Assembly: GCA_964035545.1 (NCBI GenBank)
Contig: CAXIUT010000056.1
Location: 1 to 51,021 of the forward strand
Reading direction: 5' to 3'
DNA length: 51,021 nt
DNA from: Bugula neritina
Taxonomy: Eukaryota > Animalia > Bryozoa
Shown: in pieces, positions 1,851 to 37,203 of the stretch
Position numbering within the stretch: position 1 is the stretch's first letter
How the letters are laid out: every line of letters begins with the position of its first letter
The notes under the pieces: generated by a model
Seen by the model: the letters and a program-made list of their open reading frames with translations, nothing else
What the model was told of the DNA's origin: nothing
The model's database searches: none
Made by a program: the position numbers and the translations under genes

Positions 1851-2528
1851 TTAACGTTTCAGCTGTTCGATAAAGGCGTGTTCGGCCACAGGACCAATCC
1901 ATTGACGCGATTGCCAGACCTGATTTGACCGCGCATCCAGCGCATAGGTGTTGGTGAACGACATCTCTGCACCTTGGCAAGTTTCCACCACGTCGCGCAC
2001 CTTATACTGGCGCTCCAACTGGGTCAGCGTCTTGGTTCCTGTCACCTGCATTGAACAGTTGGCCGACAGTTTCACGGTTCTATTCTCGCTGTCCAAATAG
2101 CGATGCACACGGGTATAACTGCCACCCTTCAGGGCCGCGGCCACACTGCGGTATGGCATATCAAGCGACATCAGATCGTATCCCAGCCCGCGCGTGCCCG
2201 TCATCAGGCCACCACGCAGATAAACCGCCTGCCCTGTGCCCATGAAATACGTCGCCGTATCGCCGTTGCGCGCCAGCTCGGCCGCCGTGGCTTGGCTGCC
2301 CGTGGCCCCCACAGTCAGACGTATCAGTGGCACTGTGGACTGCTCCACCTGCGTCCGTGTCACAGCCGCCGCCGCTTGGGGGGCATTCTTATTTTTGCGC
2401 TGCTCAAACGTGCCTTTAGCAGTGGCAAACAATTGTTCCGCCAGATCAGGCGCATTGCCCTCTGATCCGCAACTGGCCAGCGCCAAAGCGGCAGCAAACA
2501 AGGCCGAAGTTTTGAACACAGATCTCAT
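1851..2528 (-). CDS. yjbF: YjbF/GfcB-family lipoprotein (group 4 capsule/EPS locus)
   Basis: Lipobox LASC; GTRGLGYDL and VWQSRQWIGP motifs; ATGA overlap with the yjbH stop supports a start at 2528. Confidence 0.75.
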   Translation of the reverse strand: MRSVFKTSALFAAALALASCGSEGNAPDLAEQLFATAKGTFEQRKNKNAPQAAAAVTRTQVEQSTVPLIRLTVGATGSQATAAELARNGDTATYFMGTGQAVYLRGGLMTGTRGLGYDLMSLDMPYRSVAAALKGGSYTRVHRYLDSENRTVKLSANCSMQVTGTKTLTQLERQYKVRDVVETCQGAEMSFTNTYALDARSNQVWQSRQWIGPVAEHAFIEQLKR

Positions 2529-4600
2529 CTCCACACCTTCCCAAAGCTCGCGTTGAGCGTTGGCCTGTCATAGGGCTTTAAGGTTTCATACAGGCGGTTT
2601 TCGATCTTCAAACGTGCGCCCCCATCGCGGGTCAAAGGCCGCAAAACGATGTCCGCAGTGTTACGGCTTGGCTGGCCAAACAAGGACGCCAATGGGATGG
2701 ATGCTGTGATGCCTTTGTCAAAGCTGCCTTCGCCAAAATCTTCAAACGGCACGTCAGTCAGCGTAAAGAACCCGCCCACTTTCCAACCGTTGTTAAACGT
2801 GCGGCTGACAGCAACCGTGCCCCCCACATCGCCCGCCAAATATCGCCCCGCATCGACCTGCGCTTCAAAGCCGCGGCCCAGATCAAAATAGGCAGACGCA
2901 TGGCCCGTCACAACGTCATAATCGCGAAAGCCCAAGCGCTGGTCAAAGTCGCGCTGCTTCACATAGTTCAGCTCGGCCCCAAGCGCAAAGCGGCGCCCCA
3001 CAGGTTTCCACAGAACCTCAGCAGACAGACCGCCAAACATGGTTTCGAAATACCCAGCCGACACACGGCCATACACTTCGGGGGCCACCTTAAAGATGTA
3101 ATCCGCAGTCAAGCGCTCTAGCGCAGGATCGCCGCCTGCGTAATACTCAGGCGCATCGGACCTAACGCGCGGCAGAACAGAATTGTTCGCTCTGGTGCGC
3201 ACGTCAATATTGCCCACGATGGGTTTGATAATCGAGCCTGACACGGAAAACCCTGGCGCCAGATCAAAGCGCCCGCGCAAGCGCAGCCCCACATCAGCGC
3301 GCAAGGGGGAATCCGGGTCGAAAAAGCTCGCACGGATATACGGTTTCAGGCTCCAATTGAACGTTGGATACAAATCAGGTGCATAAACCGCATCTGGATC
3401 CACACGGCGCACTGCGGCCACTTTGGTGCGTGCCTGCAATTGCTCAGCCCCATCGGCCGCATGTTCAAACCGTTCCAGAGCAGAGCGTTGGAAGGTGGTG
3501 CTCAGTGTGGGTAAACCATTTTCCATCGAAATAATCTCGATGGTTTCCACGGAATGCGGCAGCACACGGGTCAGGCCACGGGCCGCCCTCCCCACAGCCT
3601 GCGCGGTGGTGTAATAGGTGGTGTTGCGCACATAAACCTTGGCGTGGGTCGCCTCGACCTTCAGCGCCTCAACCTGCAACTTGCTGGCCTCCAGGACCAG
3701 TTTGGCTGGAGCTTGCAACGCAGTGGACCCCGCTCCTTGCACGGCCCAGGCGGTGTCATACCCCGCCGCACCCCGATCAGGACGCGTGAGCACAGGCAGC
3801 CCCGCCTCTTCTACACCAGAGGGGAAGGAACGACGTTTGGGGTTCAAGGCAAAGCTCAGTTGTACGCCCACTTCGGAACCATAAAGGTAATAGGCACTTA
3901 GATGGGTGTCGTTGTTGATGGCATAGTCCAGACCAAAGTTGATCTGACTGTCCCGTTTAAAAATACTGCGCGACACGGTTTCACGTAAGTATTTGTCGGA
4001 TGAATATTCCAGTTTTGCGTTGAGCCCTTTAATGGGCGTAATCCATTCGATCCCACCAAAGGCACTGACATCCCCGCTGAACCAATCGCCCGCTTGAATG
4101 CTACCTCCTTGGCCAAAATTCACAGTGCGGCGCTCATCACTGAACCGCCCCCAGCCCAAACCCGCTGTCACCTTGAATTTGGGGTGTAGACGCTTGGTGG
4201 CCACGATGTATTCGCCCGAATAGAGCCCTGTGCCAATGAAATCTTGCAAGCCGATAGTAACCGCCGGGCGATACTTGCCCTCGGTCAGAACCTGATAGCG
4301 CAGATCAAAGCTGCGGTCGTATTGTTTACCGTTCCCCACGTTGTTGAACTCTGGGATGATCGAATAGCGAAAGCTGCCTGACAGGCGCGGCAAAATCTGA
4401 AAGCTCACCGTATAGCGTTGTGCGCCCTTGAAATGAGAGGCGGTTGTGGTCAGCTCCCCATCGGGTTGCTGTTCCGCCGAGGGCATTTCAATCAGCCCAG
4501 TTGTGCCATAGGTGTTGAGCGTCGGCTTGGCTGGTTCTGCCATGCTTTGGGCAGGGATCAGGGCCAAAAAACCAAACGTCGAAAGAAGTTTGCACCGCAT
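2525..4600 (-). CDS. yjbH: YjbH/GfcD-family outer-membrane beta-barrel protein
   Basis: GTTGLIEMPSA, DRSFD, GLQDFIGTG, GRYLAGDVG, FGEGSFDKG motifs; signal peptide from ATG 4600. Confidence 0.9.
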   Translation of the reverse strand: MRCKLLSTFGFLALIPAQSMAEPAKPTLNTYGTTGLIEMPSAEQQPDGELTTTASHFKGAQRYTVSFQILPRLSGSFRYSIIPEFNNVGNGKQYDRSFDLRYQVLTEGKYRPAVTIGLQDFIGTGLYSGEYIVATKRLHPKFKVTAGLGWGRFSDERRTVNFGQGGSIQAGDWFSGDVSAFGGIEWITPIKGLNAKLEYSSDKYLRETVSRSIFKRDSQINFGLDYAINNDTHLSAYYLYGSEVGVQLSFALNPKRRSFPSGVEEAGLPVLTRPDRGAAGYDTAWAVQGAGSTALQAPAKLVLEASKLQVEALKVEATHAKVYVRNTTYYTTAQAVGRAARGLTRVLPHSVETIEIISMENGLPTLSTTFQRSALERFEHAADGAEQLQARTKVAAVRRVDPDAVYAPDLYPTFNWSLKPYIRASFFDPDSPLRADVGLRLRGRFDLAPGFSVSGSIIKPIVGNIDVRTRANNSVLPRVRSDAPEYYAGGDPALERLTADYIFKVAPEVYGRVSAGYFETMFGGLSAEVLWKPVGRRFALGAELNYVKQRDFDQRLGFRDYDVVTGHASAYFDLGRGFEAQVDAGRYLAGDVGGTVAVSRTFNNGWKVGGFFTLTDVPFEDFGEGSFDKGITASIPLASLFGQPSRNTADIVLRPLTRDGGARLKIENRLYETLKPYDRPTLNASFGKVWR

Positions 4601-4724
4601 TAAATCAACCGCCCCAAGTAAATCGTCTTTCCCCAGAATATGCCACATCTTATGCCCGATAACTATGCTTAAATTGCAGTGATAAGGCCGTGAAACAACA
4701 AGGACAATAACAGTCTTCAGATAC

Positions 4725-4753
4725 AAAAATGGCGCATGAAATCATGCGCCATT
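4725..4753 (-). terminator. Intrinsic terminator after the yjbE-like gene
   Basis: AATGGCGCATGA-AA-TCATGCGCCATT hairpin with a T-tract on the minus strand. Confidence 0.7.
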
Positions 4754-4777
4754 CTTATGTGTTCCCAAGTAGAAAAC

Positions 4778-5029
4778 TTAGGGTGCTGGTGTCGAAGATG
4801 TCGCGGAGTCATCTGTAACTGTTGCAACAACCGCGGCTGCGATAACGCCACCAATCACTGCTGTGCCAACGGTCACGCCGCCAACCAGAGTAGTTGTTGC
4901 AACGGTTGCTGCTGTCGTTGTTGCTGTCGTTGTTGTTGCTGCCACAACAGCTGTTTCAGTTTGTGCAAACGCAGATGTTGAAGTCAAAGCGACGACAGAT
5001 GCTGCAACGAGTGTGTGTGTGAGTTTCAT
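4778..5029 (-). CDS. Small secreted Thr/Ala-rich protein, YjbE/GfcA-like
   Basis: Signal peptide ending AFA, Thr-rich body, hydrophobic segment; lies directly upstream of yjbH-yjbF. Confidence 0.65.
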   Translation of the reverse strand: MKLTHTLVAASVVALTSTSAFAQTETAVVAATTTTATTTAATVATTTLVGGVTVGTAVIGGVIAAAVVATVTDDSATSSTPAP

Positions 5030-5168
5030 GGAAATTGCCCTATCTAAAAACTATTACGCAACCACTCATCGCAGAGTTGCACCAGAAAAGTCAATAAACG
5101 GTGGTTAAAAAACTGCTATACTGTGGTTATTGAGTGGGAAACTGCTCATAAGCCCATCATCTTGTGGC

Positions 5169-5942
5169 TTAACGGTTCAAAATAATGCGGTAATAGAGCG
5201 CTAGGAACCCAATTCCGAACGCCATCATCACCAAGACCAATCCCAGCACAAACCAATACGATACAAACACTGCGTCATAGGTCGGGTAAAAACCGCGGCG
5301 CATTTCCCCGATGATATGCACCAAAGGATTATACCACAGCCATCCTTGATAAGCCTTTGGTAATGTTTCAAAAGTGAAGAAGATTGTCGAAATAATGAAC
5401 ATGGGCCGATTAACGATTTTCCAGATTTGCCGCCAGACGGGGAACATGGAAAACAGGAAACAGTTCATACACCCCACCGCCAATCCCAATCCCGCCGCCA
5501 TCAACAAAGCGCGCACAATGGATGGAATGTGAATAATAGTGTGGGTTTCAAACAACATCAAAATCCCGATGATCACCACATAAAACACCATCAGATGCAC
5601 CAGCGTGTTCAGCAAAAATCGCGCAAAAATAGCATCCACAAAGGTCACAGAGGGATATTTCAGCAAAGGTTTAGAGAATTTGATCGAATCAGCCGTGCGT
5701 TGCGACACCTGCATATACAGCATGAACGGCAGGTATCCCGTGGCATAAAAAATTGGGAAATTTGTGCCCAAAGACGGCGACCGCAACACCAATCCAAAGG
5801 CCACGGACATCATCGCAATGCCCCCTGCAGGTTCTAAAATGGCCCAGATGTACCCCCCCGGAGATTTGCCGTAAGTGGTGCTCATCTCTCGCAGGACCAA
5901 TGCAAGTATGGTGCGTATCGTTCTGAATCTATTGTGAGGCAT
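5169..5942 (-). CDS. kpsM: Capsular polysaccharide ABC transporter permease (KpsM-like)
   Basis: ALVLREM-T-YG-GYIWAILEP and WYNPLVHII-R-GFY motifs; multiple TM segments; start at 5942 or 5948. Confidence 0.9.
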   Translation of the reverse strand: MPHNRFRTIRTILALVLREMSTTYGKSPGGYIWAILEPAGGIAMMSVAFGLVLRSPSLGTNFPIFYATGYLPFMLYMQVSQRTADSIKFSKPLLKYPSVTFVDAIFARFLLNTLVHLMVFYVVIIGILMLFETHTIIHIPSIVRALLMAAGLGLAVGCMNCFLFSMFPVWRQIWKIVNRPMFIISTIFFTFETLPKAYQGWLWYNPLVHIIGEMRRGFYPTYDAVFVSYWFVLGLVLVMMAFGIGFLALYYRIILNR

Positions 5943-6061
5943 CCACAATCCTACGGCACCAGTTTTTATGAATTGAAATTGGAAAACTGGATTTATCCAC
6001 GGATTGTATGTAGGAACACCCTTGGATATTCAATTATAATCTAGCGCGATAAGGCCCATTC

Positions 6062-7675
6062 TTGACCGATGATGCACCCAAGGGTTCCAAAAGCGAACCC
6101 GCCTCACAGACATCCCCTGCCCCCGCAAAACCTGCCTCTGCCTCCACAGAGCCAAAGGTCGTGGTAGCTGTGACACCAGAGACTACCAAGCCCAAACCAG
6201 ACGCAGCCACCACAGCGCCTGAAACCAACAAAGCAGCACCAAAGCCAGAGGCAAAGCCCAATCCTAAGCCAGAGGCCAAAGCAGCACCAAAGCCAGAGGC
6301 AAAGCCCGCTCCTAAGCCAAAGGTCAAAGCAGCACCAAAGCCAGAGGCAAAGCCCACTATCAAAGCCGCAAAGACAGCGGCCTCGAACGTGGTAAAATCT
6401 CCCGAAAAGCCAGAGGCTGCAAAACCTGTGCCAAAAGCTGCCGCAAAATCAACGACACCAAAGACAGCCACTAAACCGGCAAAGAAATCTGTTACAAAAT
6501 CTGCCCCCAAACCAAAGCCCATGCCTACCCCCGTTGCTCTGCCTGAAACGGGCATAAGCGGGCAATTCCGCACGCGGTTCCGTCATTTCATGATCTTTGT
6601 CACCTTTTTGATCTTCGTGGTGGCACCCTCTTTTGTGGTCTACAGCTATTTGACCCAACGGGCGGCGGATCAATACGCCTCTACCGTTGGCTTTGTCGTG
6701 CGCCAAGCCGACAGCCCTGGTCCCACAGGGGGCGGCCTTTTGGGCAGTCTTGCGTCTTTGGGTGGGGCGAATAATTCGGATTCGGACATCTTGTACGAGT
6801 TTATAAAAAGCCAACAAATGGTTGAGTCTGTTGATAAAACTCTTGATCTTCGAACCATTTACAATCTGCCAGACAATGATCCCGTCTTCACCCTTGGCGA
6901 AGACGCTTCGATCGAGGATCTGATGTGGTATTGGTCTTGGGCGGTGAATGTCTTTTATGATCCGGGCACGGGTCTGATTGAATTGCGCGTGCTGGCCTTT
7001 ACGGCAGATGATGCGCGCAACATCGCGCTTGAGATTTCCAAACAAAGCGACTCGCTGATCAACGAACTCAGCGCCATTTCGCGCGAAGACACCACGCGCT
7101 ATGCCCGCGAAGAATTGGACAAAGCGGTGGATCGGCTGCGCGAAACCCGCCAGACCCTGACCGCATTCCGAAACTCCTCCCAGATAGTGGATCCAACGGC
7201 AGATGTGCAGGGGCGCATGGGGCTGTTGAACTATCTGCAACAGCAACTGGCGGACACGATGATCGAACAGGACCTGCTGCGTGATCAAGCCCGCGAGGAT
7301 GACCCCCGTTTGCAACAATCCCAACGCCGCATTGCGGTCATTCAGGAACGCATCGACGAAGAGCGCCAGAAAATCGGCCTAGGCGACACAGGAACAGGCG
7401 AAGCCGCAGCCGAACTGGTGGGCAAATACGAAGGCCTGATTGTGGATCGCGAATTCGCCGAACAAGCTTATGTCAAAGCCCTGTCGAACTATGACGGCGC
7501 CGTCGCCGAGGCCAACCGCACCAGCCGCTATTTGGCGGAATACATCAAACCGACCACATCCCAAGAACCGCAATACCCGCAACGTTATTTGATTGTCGCC
7601 ATCCTTGCGCTCTTCTTGTTGTTGGTCTGGTTTATTCTGGTGCTGATCTATTACAGCATCAAAGACCGCCGCTAA
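6062..7675 (+). CDS. kpsE: Capsule export polysaccharide co-polymerase (KpsE-like) with a ~160-aa Pro/Ala/Lys-rich N-terminal extension
   Basis: TM, AADQYAS-F-VR, periplasmic coiled coil, P-YP-R, TM, YYSIKDRR; lies between kpsM and kpsT; start codon (TTG) uncertain. Confidence 0.88.
   Translation: MTDDAPKGSKSEPASQTSPAPAKPASASTEPKVVVAVTPETTKPKPDAATTAPETNKAAPKPEAKPNPKPEAKAAPKPEAKPAPKPKVKAAPKPEAKPTIKAAKTAASNVVKSPEKPEAAKPVPKAAAKSTTPKTATKPAKKSVTKSAPKPKPMPTPVALPETGISGQFRTRFRHFMIFVTFLIFVVAPSFVVYSYLTQRAADQYASTVGFVVRQADSPGPTGGGLLGSLASLGGANNSDSDILYEFIKSQQMVESVDKTLDLRTIYNLPDNDPVFTLGEDASIEDLMWYWSWAVNVFYDPGTGLIELRVLAFTADDARNIALEISKQSDSLINELSAISREDTTRYAREELDKAVDRLRETRQTLTAFRNSSQIVDPTADVQGRMGLLNYLQQQLADTMIEQDLLRDQAREDDPRLQQSQRRIAVIQERIDEERQKIGLGDTGTGEAAAELVGKYEGLIVDREFAEQAYVKALSNYDGAVAEANRTSRYLAEYIKPTTSQEPQYPQRYLIVAILALFLLLVWFILVLIYYSIKDRR
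6230..6355 (+). repeat. 48-bp coding tandem repeat (KAAPKPEAKP...) x~2.6
   Basis: AAAGCAGCACCAAAGCCAGAGGCAAAGCCC at 6230, 6278 and 6326. Confidence 0.9.
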
Positions 7676-7679
7676 GCAT

Positions 7680-8333
7680 ATGGTTGAACTGGTCAATTTG
7701 CGCAAATCATATGCTGTTGGCGCCACGGAAAAAGTGGTGGCCGACAATCTGTCTTTTGTGTTTCCCAAAGGAGTCAGCGTGGCGCTTTTGGGGCGCAATG
7801 GGGCGGGCAAATCCACCCTATTGCAGATGATCGCTGGCACCATGAACCCTGACAGCGGAGAGGTCATTCACAACGGCAACGTGTCTTGGCCCGTCGGGTT
7901 TTCAGGCAGCTTTCACGCCGATATGACGGGCGCGCAAAACATCCGCTTTATCGCGCGAATTTACGGCGTCGATACCTCTGAATTGATGGCCTATGTCGAA
8001 GACTTTGCCGAATTGGGCGGGCATTTCCACCAACCCGTGCGCACTTATTCGTCGGGCATGAAATCACGCCTTGCGTTTGGGGCCTCCATGGGGATCAAGT
8101 TTGACACCTATCTGGTGGACGAGGTCACATCCGTGGGCGATGCGCGCTTTAAACGCAAATGCAACATAGTGTTTCGCGACCGCATGCAAACAAGCGGTGC
8201 AATTGTGGTATCCCATTCTATGCCCACACTGAAGCGGCTGTGCGACACAGGCGTTGTGCTGGAAAACGGCCGCCTCACCGCTTTTGACACCCTGCCCGAA
8301 GCCATTGCTTTCCATAAAGAAACCATGGCATAA
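7680..8333 (+). CDS. kpsT: Capsule ABC transporter ATPase (KpsT-like)
   Basis: Walker A GRNGAGKST, signature YSSGM, Walker B YLVDE, SH switch. Confidence 0.93.
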   Translation: MVELVNLRKSYAVGATEKVVADNLSFVFPKGVSVALLGRNGAGKSTLLQMIAGTMNPDSGEVIHNGNVSWPVGFSGSFHADMTGAQNIRFIARIYGVDTSELMAYVEDFAELGGHFHQPVRTYSSGMKSRLAFGASMGIKFDTYLVDEVTSVGDARFKRKCNIVFRDRMQTSGAIVVSHSMPTLKRLCDTGVVLENGRLTAFDTLPEAIAFHKETMA

Positions 8334-8578
8334 AGCATCCTGCCCAAAACCTGAAACACTGTGTGCCCCTAAGGTACAATGAAAACAGATAATTGGTCGG
8401 GTCATTTGTTTCAGAAAACAAAGCCGACGTTCCAGCACAGCGTTGCGCCCTGCCCTATGCGGCGCACGCGCCATTTATCATTTTTAAGAACAATCTTGGG
8501 AAACAGCCCGTCATTCTTATTGGCACTGGCTGCCCTCTTCTCGGATCAGCTGCGCGTCGTTTTTGACAGGAGCTTTCT

Positions 8579-9859
8579 ATGACAACTGCCCGCCTAAAAA
8601 TCCCTTATGTTCTGCCAAGTCAGGCACAAAAACATGTAACGGTAAACGAAGCCTTTGCCGCCTTTGATGGCGTGGTGCAGCTTTCGGCCATTAGCGCGAC
8701 AACCGTCACCCCCCCAGCCTCCCCTGCAGATGGCGACACCTATGTTGTGCCCACAGGGGCCACAGAAGATTGGACAGGCCAAGATGATGCCATCGCCATT
8801 TATGACAAGACTCTTTGGAGCTTTACGCCCCCCTCCGATGGGTTTTTATGTTATGTCATCGATGACGATCGGCTCTATCGCTATCTGGCGGGGTGGGACG
8901 CTCTTCCTGGCACAGAGACGCTGGCGCAACTTGGTATCAACGGCACGGCAGACAGCACCAATCGGTTGCTCGTTCAATCCGAAGGTATCGTTTTCAATCA
9001 TGCTGGCAGCCATCAACGCACCACAGTGAACAAACAAGCCCCGACCGATGACGCCGCTTTCAGTTTTCAAACAGATTTCTCGCCGCGAGCGCTGTTTGGG
9101 CTGTTGGGCTCGGATGATTTCACCTTAAAGACTTCGCCTGATGGCAACACCTATGCCACGGGGTTTTCCGTTGAAGCCGCCACGGGCAATGTTTCTTTGG
9201 GCAACATCACGGATTATTCCAGCGCGGTCACTCTTCACAGCAGCAGCACCCCAGAATTCAGCCTAATCACTGACGTCGAAGATTCCGCAGCCATTAAATA
9301 TTTGGATGCACAGGCTGGATCCTCGCAGAATTGCCGCCTCGCATGGTCCGCTGCCAGCAATGCTTTCACCATTGAAACCAACAACACACTTGCCCTCTCG
9401 ATTTCCGCGAATGGCACCGTGTCACACCCTCAAACACCGACCCTGTCCTACAGTCGAAATACGGATTTGTCCTGGGGTGGAAACACATCCGAAAAGATCG
9501 CGTTTGAAACCCAGCGGGTTTTACAGGGCAATATCAGCATGAACAGCGCCATGGACGAAGTCACAATCCTCCAAGCGGGTACTTATTTGGCAGCCATACG
9601 CATTGTTACCGCCAATGGCACAACGAATTCAGGGGACGCATGGTTTCTGGAGCTTCGCCAAAATGGCAGCAACATAATCGCTGCAGGCACAAACTTGTTT
9701 TGCCCCAACCAAACCAGCGGCACCGGAGTCGAAGCAACGCATTCCTTCACCCTACCAATCATTGCAGCGACAGATGACACAGTCGAAGTCTGGATCGCAT
9801 CTATCGATAGCTCTGCCACACTAAAAGGCGCCGCGCTTGAACTGGTGAAAATCGCTTAA
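8579..9859 (+). CDS. DUF2793-domain protein (GTA/phage tail-fibre-like)
   Basis: N-terminal PY-PSQAQKHVT-NEA and LGIN-TAD-TNRL...KTSPDG segments typical of DUF2793 proteins; beta-rich C-terminus; AGGAG RBS. Confidence 0.8.
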   Translation: MTTARLKIPYVLPSQAQKHVTVNEAFAAFDGVVQLSAISATTVTPPASPADGDTYVVPTGATEDWTGQDDAIAIYDKTLWSFTPPSDGFLCYVIDDDRLYRYLAGWDALPGTETLAQLGINGTADSTNRLLVQSEGIVFNHAGSHQRTTVNKQAPTDDAAFSFQTDFSPRALFGLLGSDDFTLKTSPDGNTYATGFSVEAATGNVSLGNITDYSSAVTLHSSSTPEFSLITDVEDSAAIKYLDAQAGSSQNCRLAWSAASNAFTIETNNTLALSISANGTVSHPQTPTLSYSRNTDLSWGGNTSEKIAFETQRVLQGNISMNSAMDEVTILQAGTYLAAIRIVTANGTTNSGDAWFLELRQNGSNIIAAGTNLFCPNQTSGTGVEATHSFTLPIIAATDDTVEVWIASIDSSATLKGAALELVKIA

Positions 9860-10845: not shown

Positions 10846-10873
10846 TTTCACATTCCCCTTATTTACAAGGCAT

Positions 10874-23869: not shown

Positions 23870-23892
23870 CTCTGTTTTGAAATGATTTTATT

Positions 23893-26331: not shown

Positions 26332-26343
26332 AGAGCGGGTTAG

Positions 26344-29260: not shown

Positions 29261-30642
29261 AGATGCACATCACCCTCCAGCTAACCGATCCAGACGGCGT
29301 TGTTCACGACCATCAGGTCGCGGTTCTGGACAAGGAATTTAGCACCTCTGGTGAGGTTGGCCTGTCCATTTCAGAAAGCAAGGGTTTGCTGCTCGCGTTG
29401 CAAACGGAAATCACATCTGCCCAAACACAAGCCTATTGCACGGCACACTCGTCGTGCCCTTGCTGTGACCGCAAGTTGCGGAGGAAAGGCCATAAAAACA
29501 TCCGCTACCGCACGGTTTTTGGTGACATTCCTATTCACAGTCCACGGTTTTATCATTGCGCATGCCAAGACAAGGCTGCCCAGACCTTTAGCCCCCTGAC
29601 TGCATTATTACCCGATCATGTTTCTCCAGAAATGCTGTGGCTGGAAAGCAAATGGGCGTCTTTGGTTTCGTACGGTGCTAGCGTGAATTTGTTGAAAGAT
29701 GTGCTGCCGATTGACAAACAACTGACTGCGGAGACCGTGCGCCGACATTTGGGATGCGTTGGCAAGCGCTTGGAAAGCGAATTGGCTGACGAACAATATA
29801 GTTTTGTTGAGACCAGTGCCTATGAACGTGAGCGGCTTCCAGTCCCAGACGGCCCGATCACGGTTGGCATTGATGGTGGCTATGTACGTTCGCGCAAGAA
29901 GGGCCAATCCCATTTTGAAGTGACTGTGGGGAAATCAATTCCTACTGATCGTCCAAATCGTTACATTGGCCTTGTGCAAAGTCATGATGAAAAACCCAAA
30001 CGCCGACTGCATGGCATATTGAAAGATCAAGGCTGGCAGGAAAACCAGCATGTGACGTTCATGACCGATGGGGGCGACAGCGTGATCAATATCGCACGGG
30101 ATATGGCTCCTGCATCCACACATATCCTAGACTGGTTTCACATTACGATGCGCATCACGGTGATGGGACAATATATAAAGGGCCTGATCCATCATAATCC
30201 GGACGAGGGCGAAGAAATGGCCCGGATGCTGCGGCAGATCAAAGGATATCTGTGGAATGGCAATCTGCATAACGGGCAACAGGTTATCGAAGATCTAGTC
30301 ATGGATCTTGATGGGGTTGAAACGGAATATGCCAGCATCAAGGCGCTACGAAAGGCAGCAGGTGAATTCCAGACATACATCACAAATAACGCCTGGATGA
30401 TCCCCAACTATGCTGAACGCCGCCGTTATGGCGAACGTGTCTCGACCGGATTTGTCGAAAGCACCGTCAATACCGTCGTCGGAAAACGCTTCTGTAAACG
30501 TCAACAAATGCGCTGGTCAAAAACAGGTGCACATCTCATGCTGCAAACCCGGACTCGAACTTTGGACGGAACGTTGCGGGATAAATTCGAACAATGGTAC
30601 CCGGGAATGAAAGACAGCAATCAAACCAAATGCGCAGCATAA
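29257..30642 (+). CDS. ISKra4-family (Mutator-like DDE) transposase
   Basis: GIDGGYVR, TDGG, HILDWFHI-MR, STGFVES-VN, KRQQMRWS-GAH; N-terminal CxxC...CxC. Confidence 0.9.
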   Translation: MKMHITLQLTDPDGVVHDHQVAVLDKEFSTSGEVGLSISESKGLLLALQTEITSAQTQAYCTAHSSCPCCDRKLRRKGHKNIRYRTVFGDIPIHSPRFYHCACQDKAAQTFSPLTALLPDHVSPEMLWLESKWASLVSYGASVNLLKDVLPIDKQLTAETVRRHLGCVGKRLESELADEQYSFVETSAYERERLPVPDGPITVGIDGGYVRSRKKGQSHFEVTVGKSIPTDRPNRYIGLVQSHDEKPKRRLHGILKDQGWQENQHVTFMTDGGDSVINIARDMAPASTHILDWFHITMRITVMGQYIKGLIHHNPDEGEEMARMLRQIKGYLWNGNLHNGQQVIEDLVMDLDGVETEYASIKALRKAAGEFQTYITNNAWMIPNYAERRRYGERVSTGFVESTVNTVVGKRFCKRQQMRWSKTGAHLMLQTRTRTLDGTLRDKFEQWYPGMKDSNQTKCAA

Positions 30643-30674
30643 ATGCCCCACGCTTTGGGGTGCTCTCCTCTTTC

Positions 30675-30782: not shown

Positions 30783-33700
30783 TCAACGTTTTTTAGAACC
30801 AGTACGCCGGCGCATTAGACCCTTCCGGGACGACTTTGTTGCGTTTGGATTCAGCTGTTCAATGGCAATGTCGGGGCGATCTGTAAAGATTTCACGGTGC
30901 CCTGCTTGAATTGCGGATTGTATGGCTTCAGCCTTGTTTACGACCCAGATACCGACTCTGGAAGGGTCGATGTCCCCAATCCCATTCTGGGCTTTCAGGG
31001 CTTTTAGTAATGCTTGGTTCAAAGTTATTCCACAGCCAGAAATCGATGAGAAGCGTTCGATTGTCTTTTCAAGGCTGCCAAGCGTTTCAATCGACCGAAA
31101 GTTCACGGATGCAAGCAAAGGAACATCTTTGTCCAATTCTCGAATGGTTTCAAGAATTTCAGGTGAAAAGCTGGTTAGCGTTACCCGATCCATCATATTG
31201 CGGCCACGCAGATTGTCCAACGTCAACGCGGCCATTCCATCGTAATGGTTGCCAACCGCATCGTTCTTTAGCTCAACAAAAACATGCAAGCCGGTTGGTT
31301 GCAGAATATCCAGCACTTCATCTAAGGTAGGTATGGGTTCGTCCAAAACGACTGTCTTTTGCGTTTCGGGTGGAGACCATTTCAAGTTCAGTTTGCGCAA
31401 ATCTGATAAGGTCTGTGTTCGAATGAAACCAGTGCCAGTTGTTGTACGTTCCACAAATGCATCATGATGAACGACAAACTGATTATCTGCAGTCAGATGA
31501 ATATCAATCTCTACGGCATCTAATCCTTCCATTTGGGCAACAGCGCGATACCCTTCTAGAGAGTTTTCGCAATATAGGTTTTTGGCCCCACGATGGCCAA
31601 CAACAAAGGGCTTGCTGCGCGGCTCGGTCACTGATGTTGTGGGGGCTTTGGGGTGCCAAGGATGCAGAGGTTGCATTTTTTCTGCCGTTAGATCGTGCAT
31701 CGCTTGCTCGAATTGCCCGCCCAAACTGCGATCGATATCCACAAAATATTGCCGTGCTCTCATTCGTGTTTCGCCAAGGAAATCATCCCCGTCGACGATG
31801 ACGCGTTTGATCAAATCCAAAAGCTCATCTGGAGAATTGAAAAGATAGCAGTATTTTTCCATTGGCATCGAACTGGATGCCATCCTCAAATTGCTTCCGG
31901 CTGGCATGTACAAGAAAATCGGCCGTCCTGTCGCAAGATAATCGCTGACAACGCTTGAAATATCGGCGATCAAGAAAGCCGCATCAGTCATAAGATCAGC
32001 GGCCAGTTTGGAGCGCTCAATCACGTTGATCTCTTTCTTGCCTTTCAACTGGGTCCGTTTCAGACGTGTTTCAATTTCGCCTAGGTGGGGCAAGCGTCGG
32101 CCAACCCAAGGGTGGAATTTTGCCACAGCTTCAGTTCGGGTGAGTTCAACGGCAGCGGGGAGGAAGGCCTCGCACGTTTGCACGGATGAATAGGCCTGTT
32201 CTGACAGATTTCCTTCCCAAGTCGGAAGATATAAAAAGCTGTTAGGTTTGGTTTGCTCCAGTAATGGCAGCATGTTGCGCAATGTAGGGCGCCCGACAAT
32301 GCGAAATTTGATTGAAGAATAATCAAACCCAGAATTCCGGAACCGGTCAATCTGCGCCTGCCCAGCACACCAGACTTCGTCGTACACGCGAAAGAATTTG
32401 TGGCAGCTGGCGACTTTTTCACTGTCTCCATGGCCAAGGAAAATATGGACCAAATGATTGAAACGCAGCACGTGTAAATTGTTACCCACATTGGAAATAT
32501 ACATAACCGATAGAAGGTTGGGCGTATTGGCGACGAGCCACTCAATCTCTAGCGCAGTCTTAATAAAGACCACATCCAATTCTGGGCGGTTTTTCTTGAG
32601 GAAGTTATAGAGCGCAAGTGTGCGTACGACCAAGATAGCGTTTGGATCAGCGTTCTTGCAATATGAATACCATAGATCGACATAAAATGATGCATCCACA
32701 CCATCGCCAATATGAAGCAGATACCGTGCTTCTTTCATCAGCCCGCGCAGGTCCTCTGCCAAATACTTGCCATGCATCCCCGAAGCTGCATACCACAGTT
32801 CCGGTTTGTCCAGCTTGATCATAAGCGCGGTACCTGCTGCAACACGTGCAGGCTGGTCCCATTCTACGCCGTCCATGATCTCAAGGCAGGCCGCAATGAT
32901 AAGGCTGTTTTCGTCTACAACTTTGCACTTTTTGCCAGCGAAGGTTGAAAATGAACCTGAAATATCAGCGTCTTCATGCAGGGTTTGTTCGAGATATTTC
33001 TTCAGGTTTAGTGGCCTCAAGATTGTGACGTCATCATGGGTATGTTTGGTCAATTCAAAGTCGGTGAGCGTGGTGTGTAAGCCTGAAGACTTAACCAAAA
33101 CAGTCGTTTGGCTCTTTTTGAAATAAACACGTAATGTGACGCGGGTACCATTGGTGCTTTTGAAATGGTAGGCCTCTGCGCCTGGTTCAATAACTGGATC
33201 TATAAGCTCAAACATTCCTGAGTTTGCGATCTCGTGCGCCATGTCTTCTGCGCCATCAACCTCCCGAACACCGAATTCTAGGGCCTCAGGGAAATCCCCA
33301 CCTTCTGTAAACCGCATCCAACTGCGCAGAGTTACGCCAGAAACAAATACAGGGATATCCTTGTCGTTGATGAGGTCGGTCATTGCATTAAACGTTGACT
33401 CAACATGCAAAGGATAGTTCCGCGCCAACCTTCTTGGTAGGTTTTCAAATGGGCTATGCCAGAGTGGTACTGGACCGTCGGAACGCCAGCCTGCAATTGG
33501 GTCGCTTTTCTTCCACCGCCAGCGTCCCAACAAAACTTTCGACGCCTGCTCCTGCGCCATGACTGCCGCGCTTTCGGTTTCTCCAGCGCGAATAAATGCA
33601 GTCAAACGTGCGGCATCAACCCCGCCGGCTCCAAAGGCTTTTCGGAAACGAGGTAAATGTATCCGGTTTGACCAAAGGTACTCTCCCAAATCACCACTAT

Positions 33701-35183
33701 TTTGGATCGTATCTGCCGCGGCCATCAGCAATTCCTGAGAAGGATACGCTTTGTTCAGACGCAATAGGATCGAACGTGCCAATGTATTAAGGCCAAAGCG
33801 GCGTAAGATGGCGACAAGGGTTTTATACGCAGCAAGACTGCGCCCACCTTTTTCAAAATAGACACGACATTCTTCCAACGCCTTGGTTAATTCGCCATTG
33901 AGATATGCAAATCGAGCCCGATAAAACTGTGCCACGAGCGGGGCGTCTTTGTCGATATCTTCAACCATTTCTTGTGCGCGGTCTGTTTTGTTGCGCATCA
34001 ACAGTTGTTCGATCTCAAGCCCTAAAAACTCTGCATTGATCTTTGCAGAAACTGAGGCATTTCGCATCATCTGCACGGCGTCGTCTGCCAGGCCACCAGA
34101 TCCAGAAATAACCGCTTGCTGCACAAGCTGGATGCTGGCGCGCGATCGTGCAGGTAAAACGCTTATTGCATTCTTCTTTGGAAGACTTTTGACAGTTTGT
34201 TCTGCTATCTCTTTGATTGGATTTTCTTCGTCCAAAACATCTGAGTCTGCCAACTGCTGCAAGGCCCGAGCAATCATTTTTGAGCTGGTTTCACCCAAAT
34301 AATTTTCTAGATAGTCCATCATGAATTCGCGGACCCGCTGGTTGATTTCGGGCCGGTTCTCAATCATCTCAAGCATGTCGGCAAACGATGATGCATGAAG
34401 ACCAATTTTGCGATCGTACAGATAGCCTTCTACGGCTGCGCCGTAGCGCGAAATGATTGCTTTTCCTACCAACCAATTTGGAAAAATAACGGGTTTGTCC
34501 AATGCCCATGCATCAAACATAACTGAGTCACAATCGGTAATGACAACATCCGCGTTCAACAGCGCTTGGTCCAATTGAGTGCGGTCAAAATCTTCTTCCC
34601 CGATATCTGGGAAATAGTGGAAATCGCATACTTCGGACAAAGCTTCGGCATAGTCAGAAATGACATCTTGTGTTGATGTGAGTTGGTCCAGTTCTGAGTC
34701 TGCATTTAGCGTTGAGGCGAGCCAGAGTACATTAAGTGGTGGAAGTTCAACCTCTTCATCTGAGGTGTTTTCCGTTTGATCAACGACAATGGGCTTTGGT
34801 CGTTTCGCTTGTAGGCGGCGCAACATATCAATCCGTGGAGATCCCACAGGAATTGCGTTATGTGTTGCAAAAGCAAGACCCTTTTTTGACGTAACGCGCC
34901 GCTGCAACCAGCGTCCTGGGACCAAAAGAGTTTCAAAGCTGTTCGCGCGGAATTCACCTTGTGATTTGCGGAATAAGTAGTTTCGATCAGAGACCAGATA
35001 AGGCAGTAAAACTTCGGCATTGCGTGGAACAAAAAAGGCAAGATTGAGACAGTCTTCATGCATTCCAGGTTTGGCTTGAACTGACATTTCAGTGCCGAGT
35101 GCTTTTTTAATTTCTTTGAAAATTACGGTCTGATGTGGTACTAAATCAGCCGTTTTGGTCAGGTTGAAATTTAGAGTTTTCAT
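30783..35183 (-). CDS. Multidomain protein: TagF-like CDP-alditol phosphotransferase + TPR-like + degenerate LicD-like + second TagF-like + glycerophosphodiester phosphodiesterase
   Basis: VGSPRID...ADVVITDCDSVMFDAWALDKPVIF; GHGDSEK...GRP...YLPTWEG...KFHP...LIADISSVVSDYLATGRP; C-terminal VVGHRG...ENS...VEIDIHLTAD-VVHHD...PTLDEVL...VELK...TDRP. Confidence 0.8.
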   Translation of the reverse strand: MKTLNFNLTKTADLVPHQTVIFKEIKKALGTEMSVQAKPGMHEDCLNLAFFVPRNAEVLLPYLVSDRNYLFRKSQGEFRANSFETLLVPGRWLQRRVTSKKGLAFATHNAIPVGSPRIDMLRRLQAKRPKPIVVDQTENTSDEEVELPPLNVLWLASTLNADSELDQLTSTQDVISDYAEALSEVCDFHYFPDIGEEDFDRTQLDQALLNADVVITDCDSVMFDAWALDKPVIFPNWLVGKAIISRYGAAVEGYLYDRKIGLHASSFADMLEMIENRPEINQRVREFMMDYLENYLGETSSKMIARALQQLADSDVLDEENPIKEIAEQTVKSLPKKNAISVLPARSRASIQLVQQAVISGSGGLADDAVQMMRNASVSAKINAEFLGLEIEQLLMRNKTDRAQEMVEDIDKDAPLVAQFYRARFAYLNGELTKALEECRVYFEKGGRSLAAYKTLVAILRRFGLNTLARSILLRLNKAYPSQELLMAAADTIQNSGDLGEYLWSNRIHLPRFRKAFGAGGVDAARLTAFIRAGETESAAVMAQEQASKVLLGRWRWKKSDPIAGWRSDGPVPLWHSPFENLPRRLARNYPLHVESTFNAMTDLINDKDIPVFVSGVTLRSWMRFTEGGDFPEALEFGVREVDGAEDMAHEIANSGMFELIDPVIEPGAEAYHFKSTNGTRVTLRVYFKKSQTTVLVKSSGLHTTLTDFELTKHTHDDVTILRPLNLKKYLEQTLHEDADISGSFSTFAGKKCKVVDENSLIIAACLEIMDGVEWDQPARVAAGTALMIKLDKPELWYAASGMHGKYLAEDLRGLMKEARYLLHIGDGVDASFYVDLWYSYCKNADPNAILVVRTLALYNFLKKNRPELDVVFIKTALEIEWLVANTPNLLSVMYISNVGNNLHVLRFNHLVHIFLGHGDSEKVASCHKFFRVYDEVWCAGQAQIDRFRNSGFDYSSIKFRIVGRPTLRNMLPLLEQTKPNSFLYLPTWEGNLSEQAYSSVQTCEAFLPAAVELTRTEAVAKFHPWVGRRLPHLGEIETRLKRTQLKGKKEINVIERSKLAADLMTDAAFLIADISSVVSDYLATGRPIFLYMPAGSNLRMASSSMPMEKYCYLFNSPDELLDLIKRVIVDGDDFLGETRMRARQYFVDIDRSLGGQFEQAMHDLTAEKMQPLHPWHPKAPTTSVTEPRSKPFVVGHRGAKNLYCENSLEGYRAVAQMEGLDAVEIDIHLTADNQFVVHHDAFVERTTTGTGFIRTQTLSDLRKLNLKWSPPETQKTVVLDEPIPTLDEVLDILQPTGLHVFVELKNDAVGNHYDGMAALTLDNLRGRNMMDRVTLTSFSPEILETIRELDKDVPLLASVNFRSIETLGSLEKTIERFSSISGCGITLNQALLKALKAQNGIGDIDPSRVGIWVVNKAEAIQSAIQAGHREIFTDRPDIAIEQLNPNATKSSRKGLMRRRTGSKKR

Positions 35184-35797
35184 AAAAATATTTCCTTGGT
35201 CTTTAAGATCGTAATCTGCAATTCAGTGGTGTTTTTAATGCCTCACAACCGAATTGAAGCGGTCGTGATGATTTATAATATCCGTTCTGAAATCCAGATC
35301 ACCGATTTTTGTCAGAATTAAAATGGTTCATATATAGTTAGTTTAACGTTGAAAAGGGATAACCCAATAGACATTTTGTATTCGGGCTCTGCGCATTTTA
35401 AAACTGTAAACTGCGGTGTGATGCCCAGTTTGAGGGTGGGGGACTTAGGCACAAATAGTTTTTGTGGTCTTTTCCCGCAAACGTTCAAGTCGCTCTTTTC
35501 CGTTGTATGCTCATCATTGTGTTGAAATATTTGGACCAATGATCAAGAGGTACGCTGTACATCAGGATAAGATGTGTTGCGCATGAAATTGTAAAATTGG
35601 AGGGCGCATTTCGAGCAGAAATATTGGCCCAAACATAAGCATAAGCGGCAACACGCCGCGCCCAAGATTTCTAGGCATTGATCACCGATAATGAAGGATG
35701 CTAACACACAAGAACAAGCAAGAACGAGTTGACTTTTTTGCAGTTGTGCGAAAAGTTAACGGTAATTACGTCTAAAAATTTTGAAAGAAATGTATAC

Positions 35798-36502
35798 ATG
35801 ACCGAGTCTTCGACGAGCGATCCTTTCTCCCTGCTGCTGTTGTCAGGTGGAGTAGGGCAACGCAGTGAACATCACGAGCCAAAACAATTCTATAACCTTT
35901 TGGGTCACCCTATTGTCGCCCACTCTTTAATTGCTGCAATGCAAGTCGACAAAATTGTGGAGATCATTGTAAATGCGCCGGCAGGTTACGAAGCTCGTAC
36001 AGAAGAAATAATGAAATCTTATTGTGGAACCAAGCCGTTTAAGATCATTAGCCCAGGCAAAAACCGTCAAGAAAGCTGCGAGTTGCTTGCAGAGGCTGCG
36101 TCACATCCGAATGTGGTCTTGCACGAAGCAGCTCGGCCCTTTGTGGACAAAGATGTCTTTGAACGTTTGATCGAAGATCCAGAAACGAATGCAGGCTATT
36201 TTTTGCCGCTATCCTTTTCTATTTGCCAAATTTCGCCAGTGACTCAATTGGTTATGCGAGGCGTTCCGCGGGACGAGGTGTCCAATGTCATGCTGCCCCA
36301 AAAATTTGACCGTGCAGCACTGATAAAAGGGCACAAGAAAGCCCGCGAGCACAATAAAGTTTTTACCGAAGATGCTGTGATGTGCGTGGAAATGACTGGA
36401 ATGCGTTTTAAGGCGCTGCCTGGGGAAAGTAGAAACCTTAAGATTACTACGAAAGACGATTTTTCAGTCGCAGAACATATGTTTGGGAAAATTAACAGAT
36501 GA
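35798..36502 (+). CDS. IspD/TarI-family alditol-phosphate cytidylyltransferase
   Basis: LSGGVGQR-PKQF, G-NRQES, VLHEAARPF, PQ-F, TEDA, NLKITT-DD; probable ATG at 35798 (ORF open from 35729). Confidence 0.85.
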   Translation: MTESSTSDPFSLLLLSGGVGQRSEHHEPKQFYNLLGHPIVAHSLIAAMQVDKIVEIIVNAPAGYEARTEEIMKSYCGTKPFKIISPGKNRQESCELLAEAASHPNVVLHEAARPFVDKDVFERLIEDPETNAGYFLPLSFSICQISPVTQLVMRGVPRDEVSNVMLPQKFDRAALIKGHKKAREHNKVFTEDAVMCVEMTGMRFKALPGESRNLKITTKDDFSVAEHMFGKINR

Positions 36503-37203
36503 CAAGAACAATTTTAATTAGCGGGGCATCGCGCGGAATCGGACTAGAAACGTCCCGTTTGCTCGCGGCCAAGGATTCAGCATTTGACCGTGTTGTCATG
36601 ATCGCACGGGAGTCTGACGACTTTTCTGCTGCTGTGAGCGCCTTACAAGCTGACCAAGGCAACAAAGAAATCATTGCCATTCCAGCTGATCTTTCAGACC
36701 CTGGCATGGTTGATGTTATTTATGACGAGCTGGATAAGCGCGACATCCGCGTGTCCACCATCCTAAACAATGCAGGTTTCACAAAACCTGCGTCTGTTAA
36801 TGAAACCAGGCTGGAAGATTTTGAAATGACGATGCGGGTAAATTTGTATTCGCCGTTTAAGTTCATTCAGACGGCTTTGCATCGCAGTCATCCATTGGCG
36901 CAGATCGTTAACATCGCATCCACAGCTGGCATGAACGGTCGATCTGGATGGCTCAGCTATTCGTCATCGAAGGCGGCTATGATTGCCATGTCGGAAGTGC
37001 TGCGCGATGAGTTGAAACCGTACGGAATTGAAGTCATATGCCTATCACCAGGACGTTGCGCCACTGATTTGCGCAAAAAGCTGGCTCCGGATGAAGACCC
37101 GTCAACAATCATGCAGCCTGGTCAGGTCGCTGATATCATTGAGTTGATGACGTCAGAAACGGGCAAGTTGCTTTTGAGTCAAAATCTGGTTGTCAGAACT
37201 TGA
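36499..37203 (+). CDS. SDR oxidoreductase, probable ketose-phosphate (ribulose-5-P) reductase
   Basis: SGASRGIG, NNAG, YSSSK, PGR-AT-LR; ATGA-coupled to the TarI-like gene, as in the two domains of Haemophilus Bcs1/Acs1. Confidence 0.75.
   Translation: MTRTILISGASRGIGLETSRLLAAKDSAFDRVVMIARESDDFSAAVSALQADQGNKEIIAIPADLSDPGMVDVIYDELDKRDIRVSTILNNAGFTKPASVNETRLEDFEMTMRVNLYSPFKFIQTALHRSHPLAQIVNIASTAGMNGRSGWLSYSSSKAAMIAMSEVLRDELKPYGIEVICLSPGRCATDLRKKLAPDEDPSTIMQPGQVADIIELMTSETGKLLLSQNLVVRT

Follow-up and report, generated by a model that had tools for sequence, protein, structure and literature searches.

What surface polymer might be built by a plasmid that encodes two cytidine-activated donors, one ATP-binding cassette (ABC) exporter and no recognizable glycosyltransferase? 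The question is raised by contig CAXIUT010000056.1, here called C65, of the assembly GCA_964035545.1 of the bryozoan Bugula neritina (216 Mb in 321 contigs); the window is the complete contig, 51,021 nucleotides long. The answer to which we assign a probability of about 0.5, jointly for all of its parts, is that C65 is a complete RepA-I plasmid whose host, a Roseobacter-group bacterium, lives in association with the bryozoan, and that it is a mosaic of two modules set on the export scaffold of the Roseobacter biofilm plasmids. Module A is predicted to make, and presumably to transfer, 2-hydroxyethylphosphonate (HEP); module B is a composite-transposon-like mobile cassette of separate origin that carries a TagF-family polymerase. 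The analysis establishes the identities of the genes, the boundaries of the modules and the conservation of the units.

The initial annotation, made from the letters of the window, had described a capsule-chemistry plasmid with two donors feeding one exporter, and its counts stand. There are two cytidylyltransferases, one fused to phosphoenolpyruvate mutase (PF01467-Ppm, 20276-21583) and one of the IspD/TarI type (35729-36502), and five phosphotransferase-type domains: a CDP-OH_P_transf protein (19116-20045), a LicD-like protein (26344-27581) and, inside one giant polymerase, two TagF-like domains and an NTase/LicD-like segment (residues ~593-736). Zero Pfam matches to GT2, GT4 or other glycosyltransferase families occur across the open reading frames (ORFs) scanned, and there is one ABC exporter (KpsM/E/T with an OPX protein). 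Both donors are encoded on the plasmid, but by modules of separate origin, the TarI/TagF genes being transposon cargo that comes with a donor synthase of its own; the list of phosphotransferase and capsule genes in that annotation also omitted the Bac_transf phosphoglycosyl transferase, GalE and an 812-residue sulfotransferase-fold protein, all of which belong to module A.

HEP synthesis and the transferases of module A

The genes of module A are the following.

17291-18109 (+): small polyprenyl-phosphate hexose-1-phosphate transferase, a primer enzyme (PF02397, E 1e-44; TIGR03025, E 4e-54)
18112-19119 (+): UDP-glucose 4-epimerase GalE (TIGR01179, 374 bits against a 262-bit cut-off)
19116-20045 (-): CDP-alcohol-phosphotransferase-like membrane protein, His-variant (PF01066)
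20276-21583 (+): cytidylyltransferase-Ppm fusion, Fom1-type (PF01467 and PF13714; TIGR02320, 412 bits, above cut-off)
21576-22703 (+): phosphonopyruvate decarboxylase, Ppd (TIGR03297, 490 bits against a 312-bit cut-off)
22706-23842 (+): Fe-dependent alcohol dehydrogenase, Fe-ADH (PF00465/PF25137)
23893-26331 (+): 812-aa protein with helical N-terminal repeats and a C-terminal sulfotransferase fold (predicted structure, pLDDT 74.6)
26344-27581 (+): CpsC/FKRP-like LicD-family transferase, frameshifted (ORFs 26344-27069 and 26919-27581)

The Ppm domain carries the ten-residue diagnostic motif (EDKxxxxxNS) at residue 260, and the cytidylyltransferase domain fused to it (PF01467, E 9e-13) has the HxGH motif, as HPGH, at residue 14. 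A 517-aa ORF on the opposite strand, 20192-21745 (-), matches no family and is taken to be a shadow of this gene. The best NCBIfam model for the alcohol dehydrogenase is Phn_Fe-ADH, at 157 bits, under that model's 424-bit cut-off; the homologue in Fulvitalea is annotated as phosphonoacetaldehyde reductase, and the C65 enzyme is probably a reductase of this kind, making HEP. Family scans of the ORFs found no aminotransferase on the replicon. Since Fom1 and PhpC are precedents for the cytidylyl activation of phosphonates (PMC6697681, PMC8942020), the product of the pathway should be CMP-HEP. With Fom1, PntC, PhpC and the Stackebrandtia HEP-exopolysaccharide system described in the same two papers, C65 shares the PF01467-Ppm fusion, Ppd, an Fe-ADH that is probably PhpC-like, nearby LicD-like transferases and a predicted cell-surface phosphonate. 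Unlike these systems, the C65 pathway forms part of a capsule system that is carried on a plasmid and exports by ABC transporter, and the literature searched yielded no description of its partners, a sulfotransferase-fold protein with a Trp-containing loop (W-loop), a His-variant CDP-alcohol transferase and TagF-family genes. The presence of the Bac_transf phosphoglycosyl transferase together with GalE indicates that the plasmid also encodes a sugar primer; the same pair of genes adjoins the HEP operon in L018 and L019, two of the related loci (designated by L numbers throughout) to which we return below.

Three proteins of module A are candidates for handling HEP. The first had been listed in the initial annotation as a CDP-alcohol phosphotransferase, and the family assignment is correct, but the family motif, DxxDGxxAR-x8-G-xxx-D-xxx-D, ends in His rather than Asp in the window and in L010, L018 and L019. 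The substitution defines a subfamily: the close relatives (P0016-P0039) have His at the end of the motif in 24 of 24 cases, and in distant relatives Asp or Ala stands there. The gene and the end of an ABC-2 exporter ATPase gene overlap in L018 and L019, where the HEP operon adjoins. Where the context of His-variant genes can be read (the window, L010, L018 and L019), three of the four lie near ABC exporter genes and all four beside a HEP operon.

The second candidate, the 812-aa protein, draws a blank by sequence in Pfam, NCBIfam and PDB searches and is placed by fold and language-model searches alone (Atlas score 0.95). Its model matches TPST2 with Z 13.1 and rmsd 4.2 over 232 residues, and the top 50 of 50 rows are sulfotransferases. 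The family is rare (69 cluster representatives in 1.84 billion proteins; three loci in ~185,000 species genomes), and in eight of the eight loci examined its gene adjoins the HEP operon or, in L012, sits no more than 7 kb away. Two motifs characterize it: a loop, G-[FY]-G-W-[ST]-G-S, whose Trp is present in 65 of 68 sequences, and V-x-R-[DN]-P-x-D-Q-x-A-D, whose last Asp is present in 52 of 69 and replaced by Ser in 6 of 69. Aligned by motif spacing only, the Trp occupies the position of the catalytic Lys/Arg in the 5'-PSB loop of PAPS sulfotransferases. By the same spacing, the last Asp of the second motif probably stands at the position of the 3'-phosphate-binding (3'-PB) Ser. The protein has the fold of a PAPS sulfotransferase and, on this alignment, lacks both the catalytic Lys/Arg and the 3'-PB Ser. 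The Lys/Arg is essential in sulfotransferases, the K93A mutant of AtSOT18 being inactive (PMC5482895).

The third candidate is the LicD-family protein. The reading frame of its gene switches at a CCCC run (26935-26938), where L010 reads Leu-Leu-Pro-Pro; the gene is intact elsewhere, in a single frame on the Phaeobacter inhibens plasmid pP78_d and as a 402-aa gene in L010. The family profile matches FKRP, a CDP-ribitol ribitol-phosphate transferase, at E 1e-10, and the Asp triad is kept family-wide (A3 invariants D227, D229 and D231). The architecture of the gene resembles that of CpsC, a LicD-family poly(glycerol-phosphate) transition transferase (PMC11666461). To regard it as specific for HEP would be too simple, its domain being closer to the LicD-type proteins of the phosphonate-free pP78_d and L007 (9e-33 and 3e-22) than to the Fulvitalea LicD (6e-4); the gene is nonetheless linked to HEP in L010, L012 and L018, and a LicD-type gene also neighbors the HEP operon in Fulvitalea. 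The literature searched, which is part of what is published, yielded no TagF-family or sulfotransferase-fold enzyme that acts with CMP-phosphonates.

These eight genes (phosphoglycosyl transferase, GalE, CDP-alcohol transferase, cytidylyltransferase-Ppm, Ppd, Fe-ADH, sulfotransferase-fold protein and LicD) constitute a conserved unit. Its parts recur in seven loci besides the window and L018. In L018, from a Pacificibacter metagenome-assembled genome (MAG), ten genes form one contiguous block with an ABC-2 exporter of its own, in the order sulfotransferase-fold, LicD-like, ABC-2 permease, ATPase, CDP-alcohol transferase, cytidylyltransferase-Ppm, Ppd and Fe-ADH, followed by convergent phosphoglycosyl transferase and epimerase genes. 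Large parts are also present in L010, L012/L017 and L019; L010 is close to the window (Ppm 94% and KpsT 92% identical), and L017 has a module A set with DUF2793 and a GT2 gene and without a TagF gene. Other HEP loci carry nearby glycosyltransferases or TagF genes: small stand-alone TagF-family genes (PF04464, ~380-394 aa) are immediate neighbors of the HEP operon and of the gene for the sulfotransferase-fold protein in L011 (7475-8611; GCA_054043945.1), L014 (8637-9821; Alteromonadaceae Bs31) and L015 (17411-18574; a Halioglobus MAG), and their products are candidate CMP-HEP transferases. A minimal version of four genes occupies 11995-16453 of L004 (pFA2 of Fulvitalea axinellae, a plasmid of a sponge-associated member of the Bacteroidota), where cytidylyltransferase-Ppm (64% identical), Ppd, phosphonoacetaldehyde reductase and LicD adjoin plasmid replication and partition genes. 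Because the LicD and TagF families normally move alditol-phosphate from CDP-alditols, these associations make it seem that CMP-HEP is handled as an analogue of a CDP-alditol.

The transposon-borne TagF cassette

Module B comprises five features; the domains of its polymerase are given after them.

27841-30669 (+): ISKra4-family insertion sequence (IS), copy L (100% inverted repeat; terminal inverted repeats; NF033572, 361 bits)
30783-35183 (-): 1,466-aa polymerase with TagF-like, TPR, degenerate NTase/LicD-like, TagF-like and GDPD domains (full-length relatives 38-44% identical)
35729-36502 (+): IspD/TarI-type CDP-alditol cytidylyltransferase (PF01128; PDB matches IspD 6e-19, TarI 4e-14)
36499-37203 (+): short-chain dehydrogenase, SDR (PF00106)
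37488-40316 (-): ISKra4-family IS, copy R, inverted (100% inverted repeat)
Polymerase, profile ~72-297: TagF-like domain 1 (TarL 8va1, 7e-10; Cps3D 8qoy, 5e-5)
Polymerase, profile 312-545: TPR domain (LapB-like, 3.6e-6)
Polymerase, window residues 968-1128: TagF-like domain 2 (PF04464)
Polymerase, profile 1164-1430: GDPD domain (1.7e-37)

The two IS arms, 2,829 nt each and 100% complementary, enclose 6,818 nt. Each arm is complete, with a pRiA4b-ORF3 protein, a resolvase, a transposase and its own ~25-bp terminal inverted repeats, and relatives at 69-72% identity are found on many Roseobacter-group plasmids. The GC content of the cargo is 46.5%, against ~53% elsewhere on the plasmid. A composite transposon is thereby indicated by two full flanking IS copies; the junctions of the IS, outer or inner, show no clean direct repeat that could be a target-site duplication, only a 5-nt cross-match. 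The perfect identity of the IS copies makes the cassette look recently acquired.

The polymerase has PF04464 matches in both halves. Between them, residues 593-736 align with the LicD core by profile comparison (probability 31%, E 5e-4), and the low-confidence model of this segment (pLDDT 56) finds NTase folds as its best matches, LnuA and eight FKRP chains, at 5e-4 to 9e-4. The Asp triad is lost, and the LicD-like domain inside the polymerase is, on this modeling, real at the level of the fold only. Both of the LicD domains that had been proposed for the plasmid are accordingly recognizable, but one is degenerate and the other belongs to the frameshifted gene of module A. In the GDPD domain (window 31000-31650, residues ~1190-1440) His-Arg-Gly, Glu-Asn, Glu/Asp and His are kept family-wide (A1, nearly invariant columns); this domain also matches the GP-PDE domains of ~840-aa PDB proteins labeled ORF58 (9euf, 9eul). 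No match to a fused GT-A or GT-B glycosyltransferase domain was found in the polymerase.

The IspD-type enzyme scores slightly better against IspD than against TarI, while the fused relative matches TarI best. The SDR is probably its sugar-phosphate reductase partner, the two genes making up a split, Bcs1-like pair. Full-length relatives of the polymerase are always followed by a fused IspD-SDR gene (L007, L009), and the polymerase/IspD-SDR pair is conserved in capsule loci, one of them with KpsC/S: in L007 the polymerase relative is accompanied by tagD, glycerol-3-phosphate dehydrogenase, a TPR-LicD protein, more TagF genes and a KpsC/S-type gene. Cytidylyltransferases of two types, tagD and IspD, thus accompany the polymerase there; the sole PF01467-type enzyme of C65 is the Ppm fusion.

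A teichoic-type capsule in a Gram-negative bacterium is not new, since group 2 capsules that resemble teichoic acids and are built by TagF-like polymerases have been described as a class (PMC5974469, PMC11666461) and pP78_d has a 1,475-aa TagF-family protein adjoining tagD. Like the systems of the capsule polymerases and transition transferases Cps3D/Cps7D, CpsA and CpsC, that of C65 combines a cytoplasmic TagF-like polymerase with TPR, ABC-dependent export, an adjacent CDP-alditol donor gene and a CpsC-like LicD partner with an N-terminal helical domain; unlike theirs, its polymerase has two TagF-like domains, a degenerate NTase-like domain and a GDPD domain, and not a glycosyltransferase domain. 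The group 2 Cps systems differ further in that no KpsC/KpsS was found on C65, its phosphoglycosyl transferase suggests a polyprenyl primer, and its host is marine and non-pathogenic. With Bcs1/Bcs3 of Haemophilus influenzae type b (PMC10299916) C65 shares Kps-type export and an IspD-type cytidylyltransferase and SDR feeding a large multi-domain TagF-containing polymerase, but in C65 the cytidylyltransferase and SDR are separate genes and there are no ribofuranosyltransferase or phosphatase domains.

Export scaffold and replicon

The remaining features of the contig are export genes, backbone and the assembly overlap.

1851-2534 (-): YjbF/GfcB-type lipoprotein (PF11102, E 2.6e-31; homologue on pP78_d)
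2525-4726 (-): YjbH/GfcD-type outer-membrane protein (PF06082, E 1e-207; 46% to pP78_d YjbH)
4778-5029 (-): small ORF upstream of yjbH, 83 aa, with a signal peptide and a Thr/Ala/Val-rich tract
5169-5948 (-): KpsM-type ABC-2 permease (PF01061; NF050053 KpsM, E 1.4e-20, VexB; 52% to pP78_d)
6062-7675 (+): KpsE/VexD-type inner-membrane coupling protein (TIGR01010, E 8e-57, below cut-off)
7680-8333 (+): KpsT-type ABC ATPase (PF00005; nearest named models TagH and VexC; 92% to L010 KpsT)
8579-9859 (+): DUF2793 protein (PF10983, E 5e-24; also on pP78_d and in L017)
9856-12295 (-): ParB (9856-10851) and ParA (10916-12295) (PF02195, PF13614; ParA 76% to pP78_d)
12780-13787 (+): RepA-I replication initiator (PF10134, E 2e-97; 69-73% to Rhodobacteraceae RepA-I)
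13784-15802 (-): RTX calcium-binding repeat protein, repeats only (PF00353, 13 stretches)
15922-17076 (-): Wza/VexA-type OPX protein (PF02563 and PF22461; PRK15078, VexA)
38716-51021 (no strand): assembly overlap, second copy of 1-12306 (identity at offset 38,715)

The exporter is a group 2-like set of KpsM/KpsT, KpsE and OPX, which the NCBIfam Kps and Vex models match below their equivalog cut-offs. KpsC/KpsS (PF05159) has no match on the plasmid or anywhere in the assembly, from which the host chromosome is absent; in its place the plasmid has the phosphoglycosyl transferase. The 83-aa ORF may be a YjbE/GfcA-like partner, a tentative assignment, and the RTX-repeat protein scores far under the cut-offs of toxin models. 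Near its N-terminus KpsE has a 24-nt tandem repeat (6229-6372) of about six copies, encoding an Ala/Pro/Lys-rich unit of eight residues, which makes the protein ~140 residues longer than its pP78_d homologue. The DUF2793 protein, which has a weak BclA_C-like C-terminus, stands beside Kps-type or HEP loci in three unrelated contexts (window 8579-9859, L005 28262-29518, L017 15431-16819).

Michael et al. (2016, PMC5030684) define biofilm plasmids by a core of two parts, the rhamnose operon rfbABCD and an ABC exporter of the Kps type; a plasmid of this class is also one that its host needs for attachment and biofilm formation. The initial annotation had regarded the replicon as a chemical variant of the RepA-I plasmids of this kind and had asked for a comparison of gene order with them. 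Gene by gene, C65 and P. inhibens pP78_d (NZ_CP010633) have 11 scaffold genes in common, at identities of 76% for ParA, 71.5% for RepA, 61% for KpsT, 52% for KpsM, 49% for ParB, 46% for YjbH, 46% for OPX, 39% for KpsE, 35% for DUF2793, 34% for the phosphoglycosyl transferase and 29% for YjbF; RTX-repeat proteins and a LicD-like gene are also common to both. No ORF has an RfbA-, RfbC- or RfbD-type match, GalE being the sole epimerase-family gene, and the description as a chemical variant is borne out. Compared with the Phaeobacter biofilm plasmids, C65 is only 38.7 kb and is without the rhamnose operon, GDP-fucose genes, glycosyltransferases and type I secretion genes, whereas pP78_d is without the HEP pathway, the sulfotransferase-fold protein and the His-variant CDP-alcohol transferase. 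The closest matches of the PepM fusion among 72,556 PLSDB plasmids are in Bacteroidota, not in the Roseobacter group. The Gram-positive wall teichoic acid pathway (TagO, TagB/TagF/TarL, TarI/J, TagGH) offers a further likeness in its phosphoglycosyl primer enzyme, CDP-alditol synthase, TagF-family polymerase and an ABC-2 exporter, the C65 ATPase resembling TagH most; unlike that pathway, C65 has a Gram-negative host, KpsE/OPX/YjbFH for crossing the outer membrane, an extra phosphonate donor and no LCP ligase.

C65 itself is a 38,715-bp circle, with a coding fraction of ~90%, that was assembled beyond its own start: 38716-51021 duplicates 1-12306 at an offset of 38,715, with 12,301 of 12,306 bases identical. 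The elements listed in the initial annotation are where it placed them, but on a replicon of 38,715 and not 51,021 bp. All 5 mismatches in the overlap lie inside 564 nt (9644-10207 against 48359-48922); three alter the C-terminal part of the DUF2793 protein (F356I, I366M, V402F), one alters ParB (R292H) and one is silent, a cluster which suggests that two plasmid variants are present in the sample. RepA is 72% identical to the product of a gene annotated repA-I and 71.5% to P. inhibens RepA, and its relatives include those of ~65-70-kb P. inhibens plasmids; the 484-nt gap upstream of repA (12296-12779) is probably the origin region. Rfam, at gathering threshold, has zero matches on the replicon. 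A PLSDB DNA search with 19.7 kb of the plasmid as query returned no close relative, only short IS and recombinase matches. Searched across the assembly, the IS and ParA are present on C65 alone, so that no host chromosome or sibling replicon can be identified in it.

One polymer or two

The mosaic could work as follows. Ppm, Ppd and Fe-ADH would make HEP, which the fused cytidylyltransferase would convert to CMP-HEP; the phosphoglycosyl transferase and GalE would place a hexose primer on polyprenyl phosphate. At the inner membrane face the His-variant CDP-alcohol transferase and the CpsC/FKRP-like LicD protein would transfer HEP onto the lipid-linked polymer, which the helical, sulfotransferase-fold protein might modify or terminate. 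In module B the IspD-type cytidylyltransferase and the SDR would make a CDP-alditol, perhaps ribitol-like, from which the 1,466-aa polymerase, with its two TagF domains, would build an alditol-phosphate chain. Module A would supply the primer, the phosphonate ends or side groups and export, by KpsM/T, KpsE and the Wza-like protein, probably with YjbF/H. As the plasmid has no glycosyltransferase, the building of the chain falls most probably to module B. Every substrate, the order of the steps and the meeting of both donors on one polymer are what we infer from the gene content.

A single hybrid polymer carrying both HEP and alditol-phosphate, the product proposed in the initial annotation, falls somewhat short of an even chance. 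It is made plausible by the lack of any other chain-builder on the plasmid, and HEP operons do lie beside TagF and LicD genes; the pairing of tagD-type and IspD-type cytidylyltransferases in L007, set beside the Ppm fusion as the sole PF01467-type enzyme of C65, also speaks for it. A number of observations weigh against it. By its sequence, the CDP-alcohol transferase has His where its family has the last catalytic Asp; the LicD-type gene carries a frameshift in the present assembly; the IspD-type enzyme is not clearly a TarI by its matches. No KpsC/KpsS was found, and the absent host chromosome could hold glycosyltransferases. The cassette is apparently recent, so that it and module A may not function together; having a donor synthase of its own, it could also yield a second, separate polymer. 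Relatives of its polymerase reside in phosphonate-free loci, as far as sequence comparison goes, and the HEP unit recurs without the TagF cassette in L017 and L018.

Several of these observations suit two independent products, with module A decorating a glycan made by chromosomal glycosyltransferases and the cassette making a teichoic-type capsule of its own, the two having only the Kps exporter in common or competing for it. The modules differ in origin and GC content, module A is found elsewhere (L017, L018, L019) alongside GT2/GT4 genes and with no giant polymerase, and relatives of module B occur in phosphonate-free capsule loci with their own donors. Yet the plasmid itself is without a glycosyltransferase, and small TagF-family genes repeatedly adjoin HEP operons elsewhere; we regard two products as a rather doubtful alternative, if one to be taken seriously.

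There is also a bolder and unlikely proposal, in which CMP-HEP would itself be a teichoic-type monomer and the LicD, TagF and CDP-alcohol transferases would cap a chain with HEP or polymerize it into an ABC-exported C-P analogue of teichoic acid. In HEP a hydroxyl is combined with an activated phosphonyl group. The W-loop sulfotransferase-fold family would then be a new enzyme of the pathway, which would either end the chain by modifying the hydroxyl of HEP or act as a transferase using a nucleotide without a 3'-phosphate, such as CMP-HEP.

The CDP-alcohol transferase could, alternatively, move HEP from CMP-HEP to diacylglycerol, giving a phosphonolipid that is unrelated to the capsule or is only its lipid anchor. 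CDP-alcohol phosphatidyltransferases are lipid-headgroup enzymes (as the NCBIfam matches reflect), and phospholipid-type genes are common in phosphonate clusters (PMC8942020). This is made improbable by the overlap of the gene with an ABC-2 ATPase gene, beside phosphoglycosyl transferase and epimerase genes, in L018 and L019, by the distinct His-variant subfamily to which the enzyme belongs, and by the equally close ties of the HEP operon to LicD/TagF genes and the sulfotransferase-fold gene. Slightly more improbable still is a decaying HEP arm, in which the LicD frameshift is genuine, the attachment of HEP has ceased and the incoming TagF cassette has taken over the function of the older chemistry. 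The frameshift does fall at the CCCC run of a gene that is intact in relatives, and the transposon has inserted 260 nt downstream of that gene, but a one-base homopolymer difference is a typical sequencing error, all other genes of module A are intact (73-94% protein identity to L010), and the CDP-alcohol transferase could still attach HEP. A chimeric contig, its inverted repeat and end overlap made by the assembler, is very improbable: C65 does come from a eukaryote assembly with many co-assembled replicons, and its repeats are perfectly identical, but circular molecules usually betray themselves by an end overlap such as this one of 12.3 kb, both repeat arms are whole IS elements that have terminal inverted repeats of their own and relatives in the family, and the gene order on either side agrees with that of natural relatives.

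The two-module mosaic on a biofilm-plasmid scaffold, to return to the reading that we favor, combines known kinds of system: RepA-I biofilm plasmids, teichoic-type ABC-exported capsules and nucleotidyl-activated phosphonate tailoring. Less expected, from the sequence comparisons, is what appears to be a conserved HEP-polymer export unit, with two enzyme subfamilies of its own and a repeated adjacency of HEP operons and teichoic-type transferase genes; no description of these subfamilies or of this adjacency was found in the literature searched. HEP esters are reported to form a major component of the polysaccharide in dissolved organic matter of the sea, and the HEP pathways of marine genomes are believed to have been sampled too sparsely (PMC8942020); little is known of how phosphonates become attached to polymers (PMC6697681). 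In C65 and its relatives a compact, conserved and partly mobile gene set, found in common marine surface colonizers, ties HEP synthesis to candidate transferases and an ABC exporter, and makes directly testable the questions of who attaches HEP, to what, and how the product is exported; genetic work could begin with the member in the record "Alteromonadaceae bacterium Bs31" (L014). Roseobacter biofilm plasmids can evidently exchange their variable part when insertion sequences capture an entire teichoic-type polymerase cassette. Were the C-P teichoic acid to prove real, the unit that marine Rhodobacterales, Alteromonadaceae and Halioglobus carry would be one genetic origin of the HEP esters reported from marine dissolved polysaccharide.

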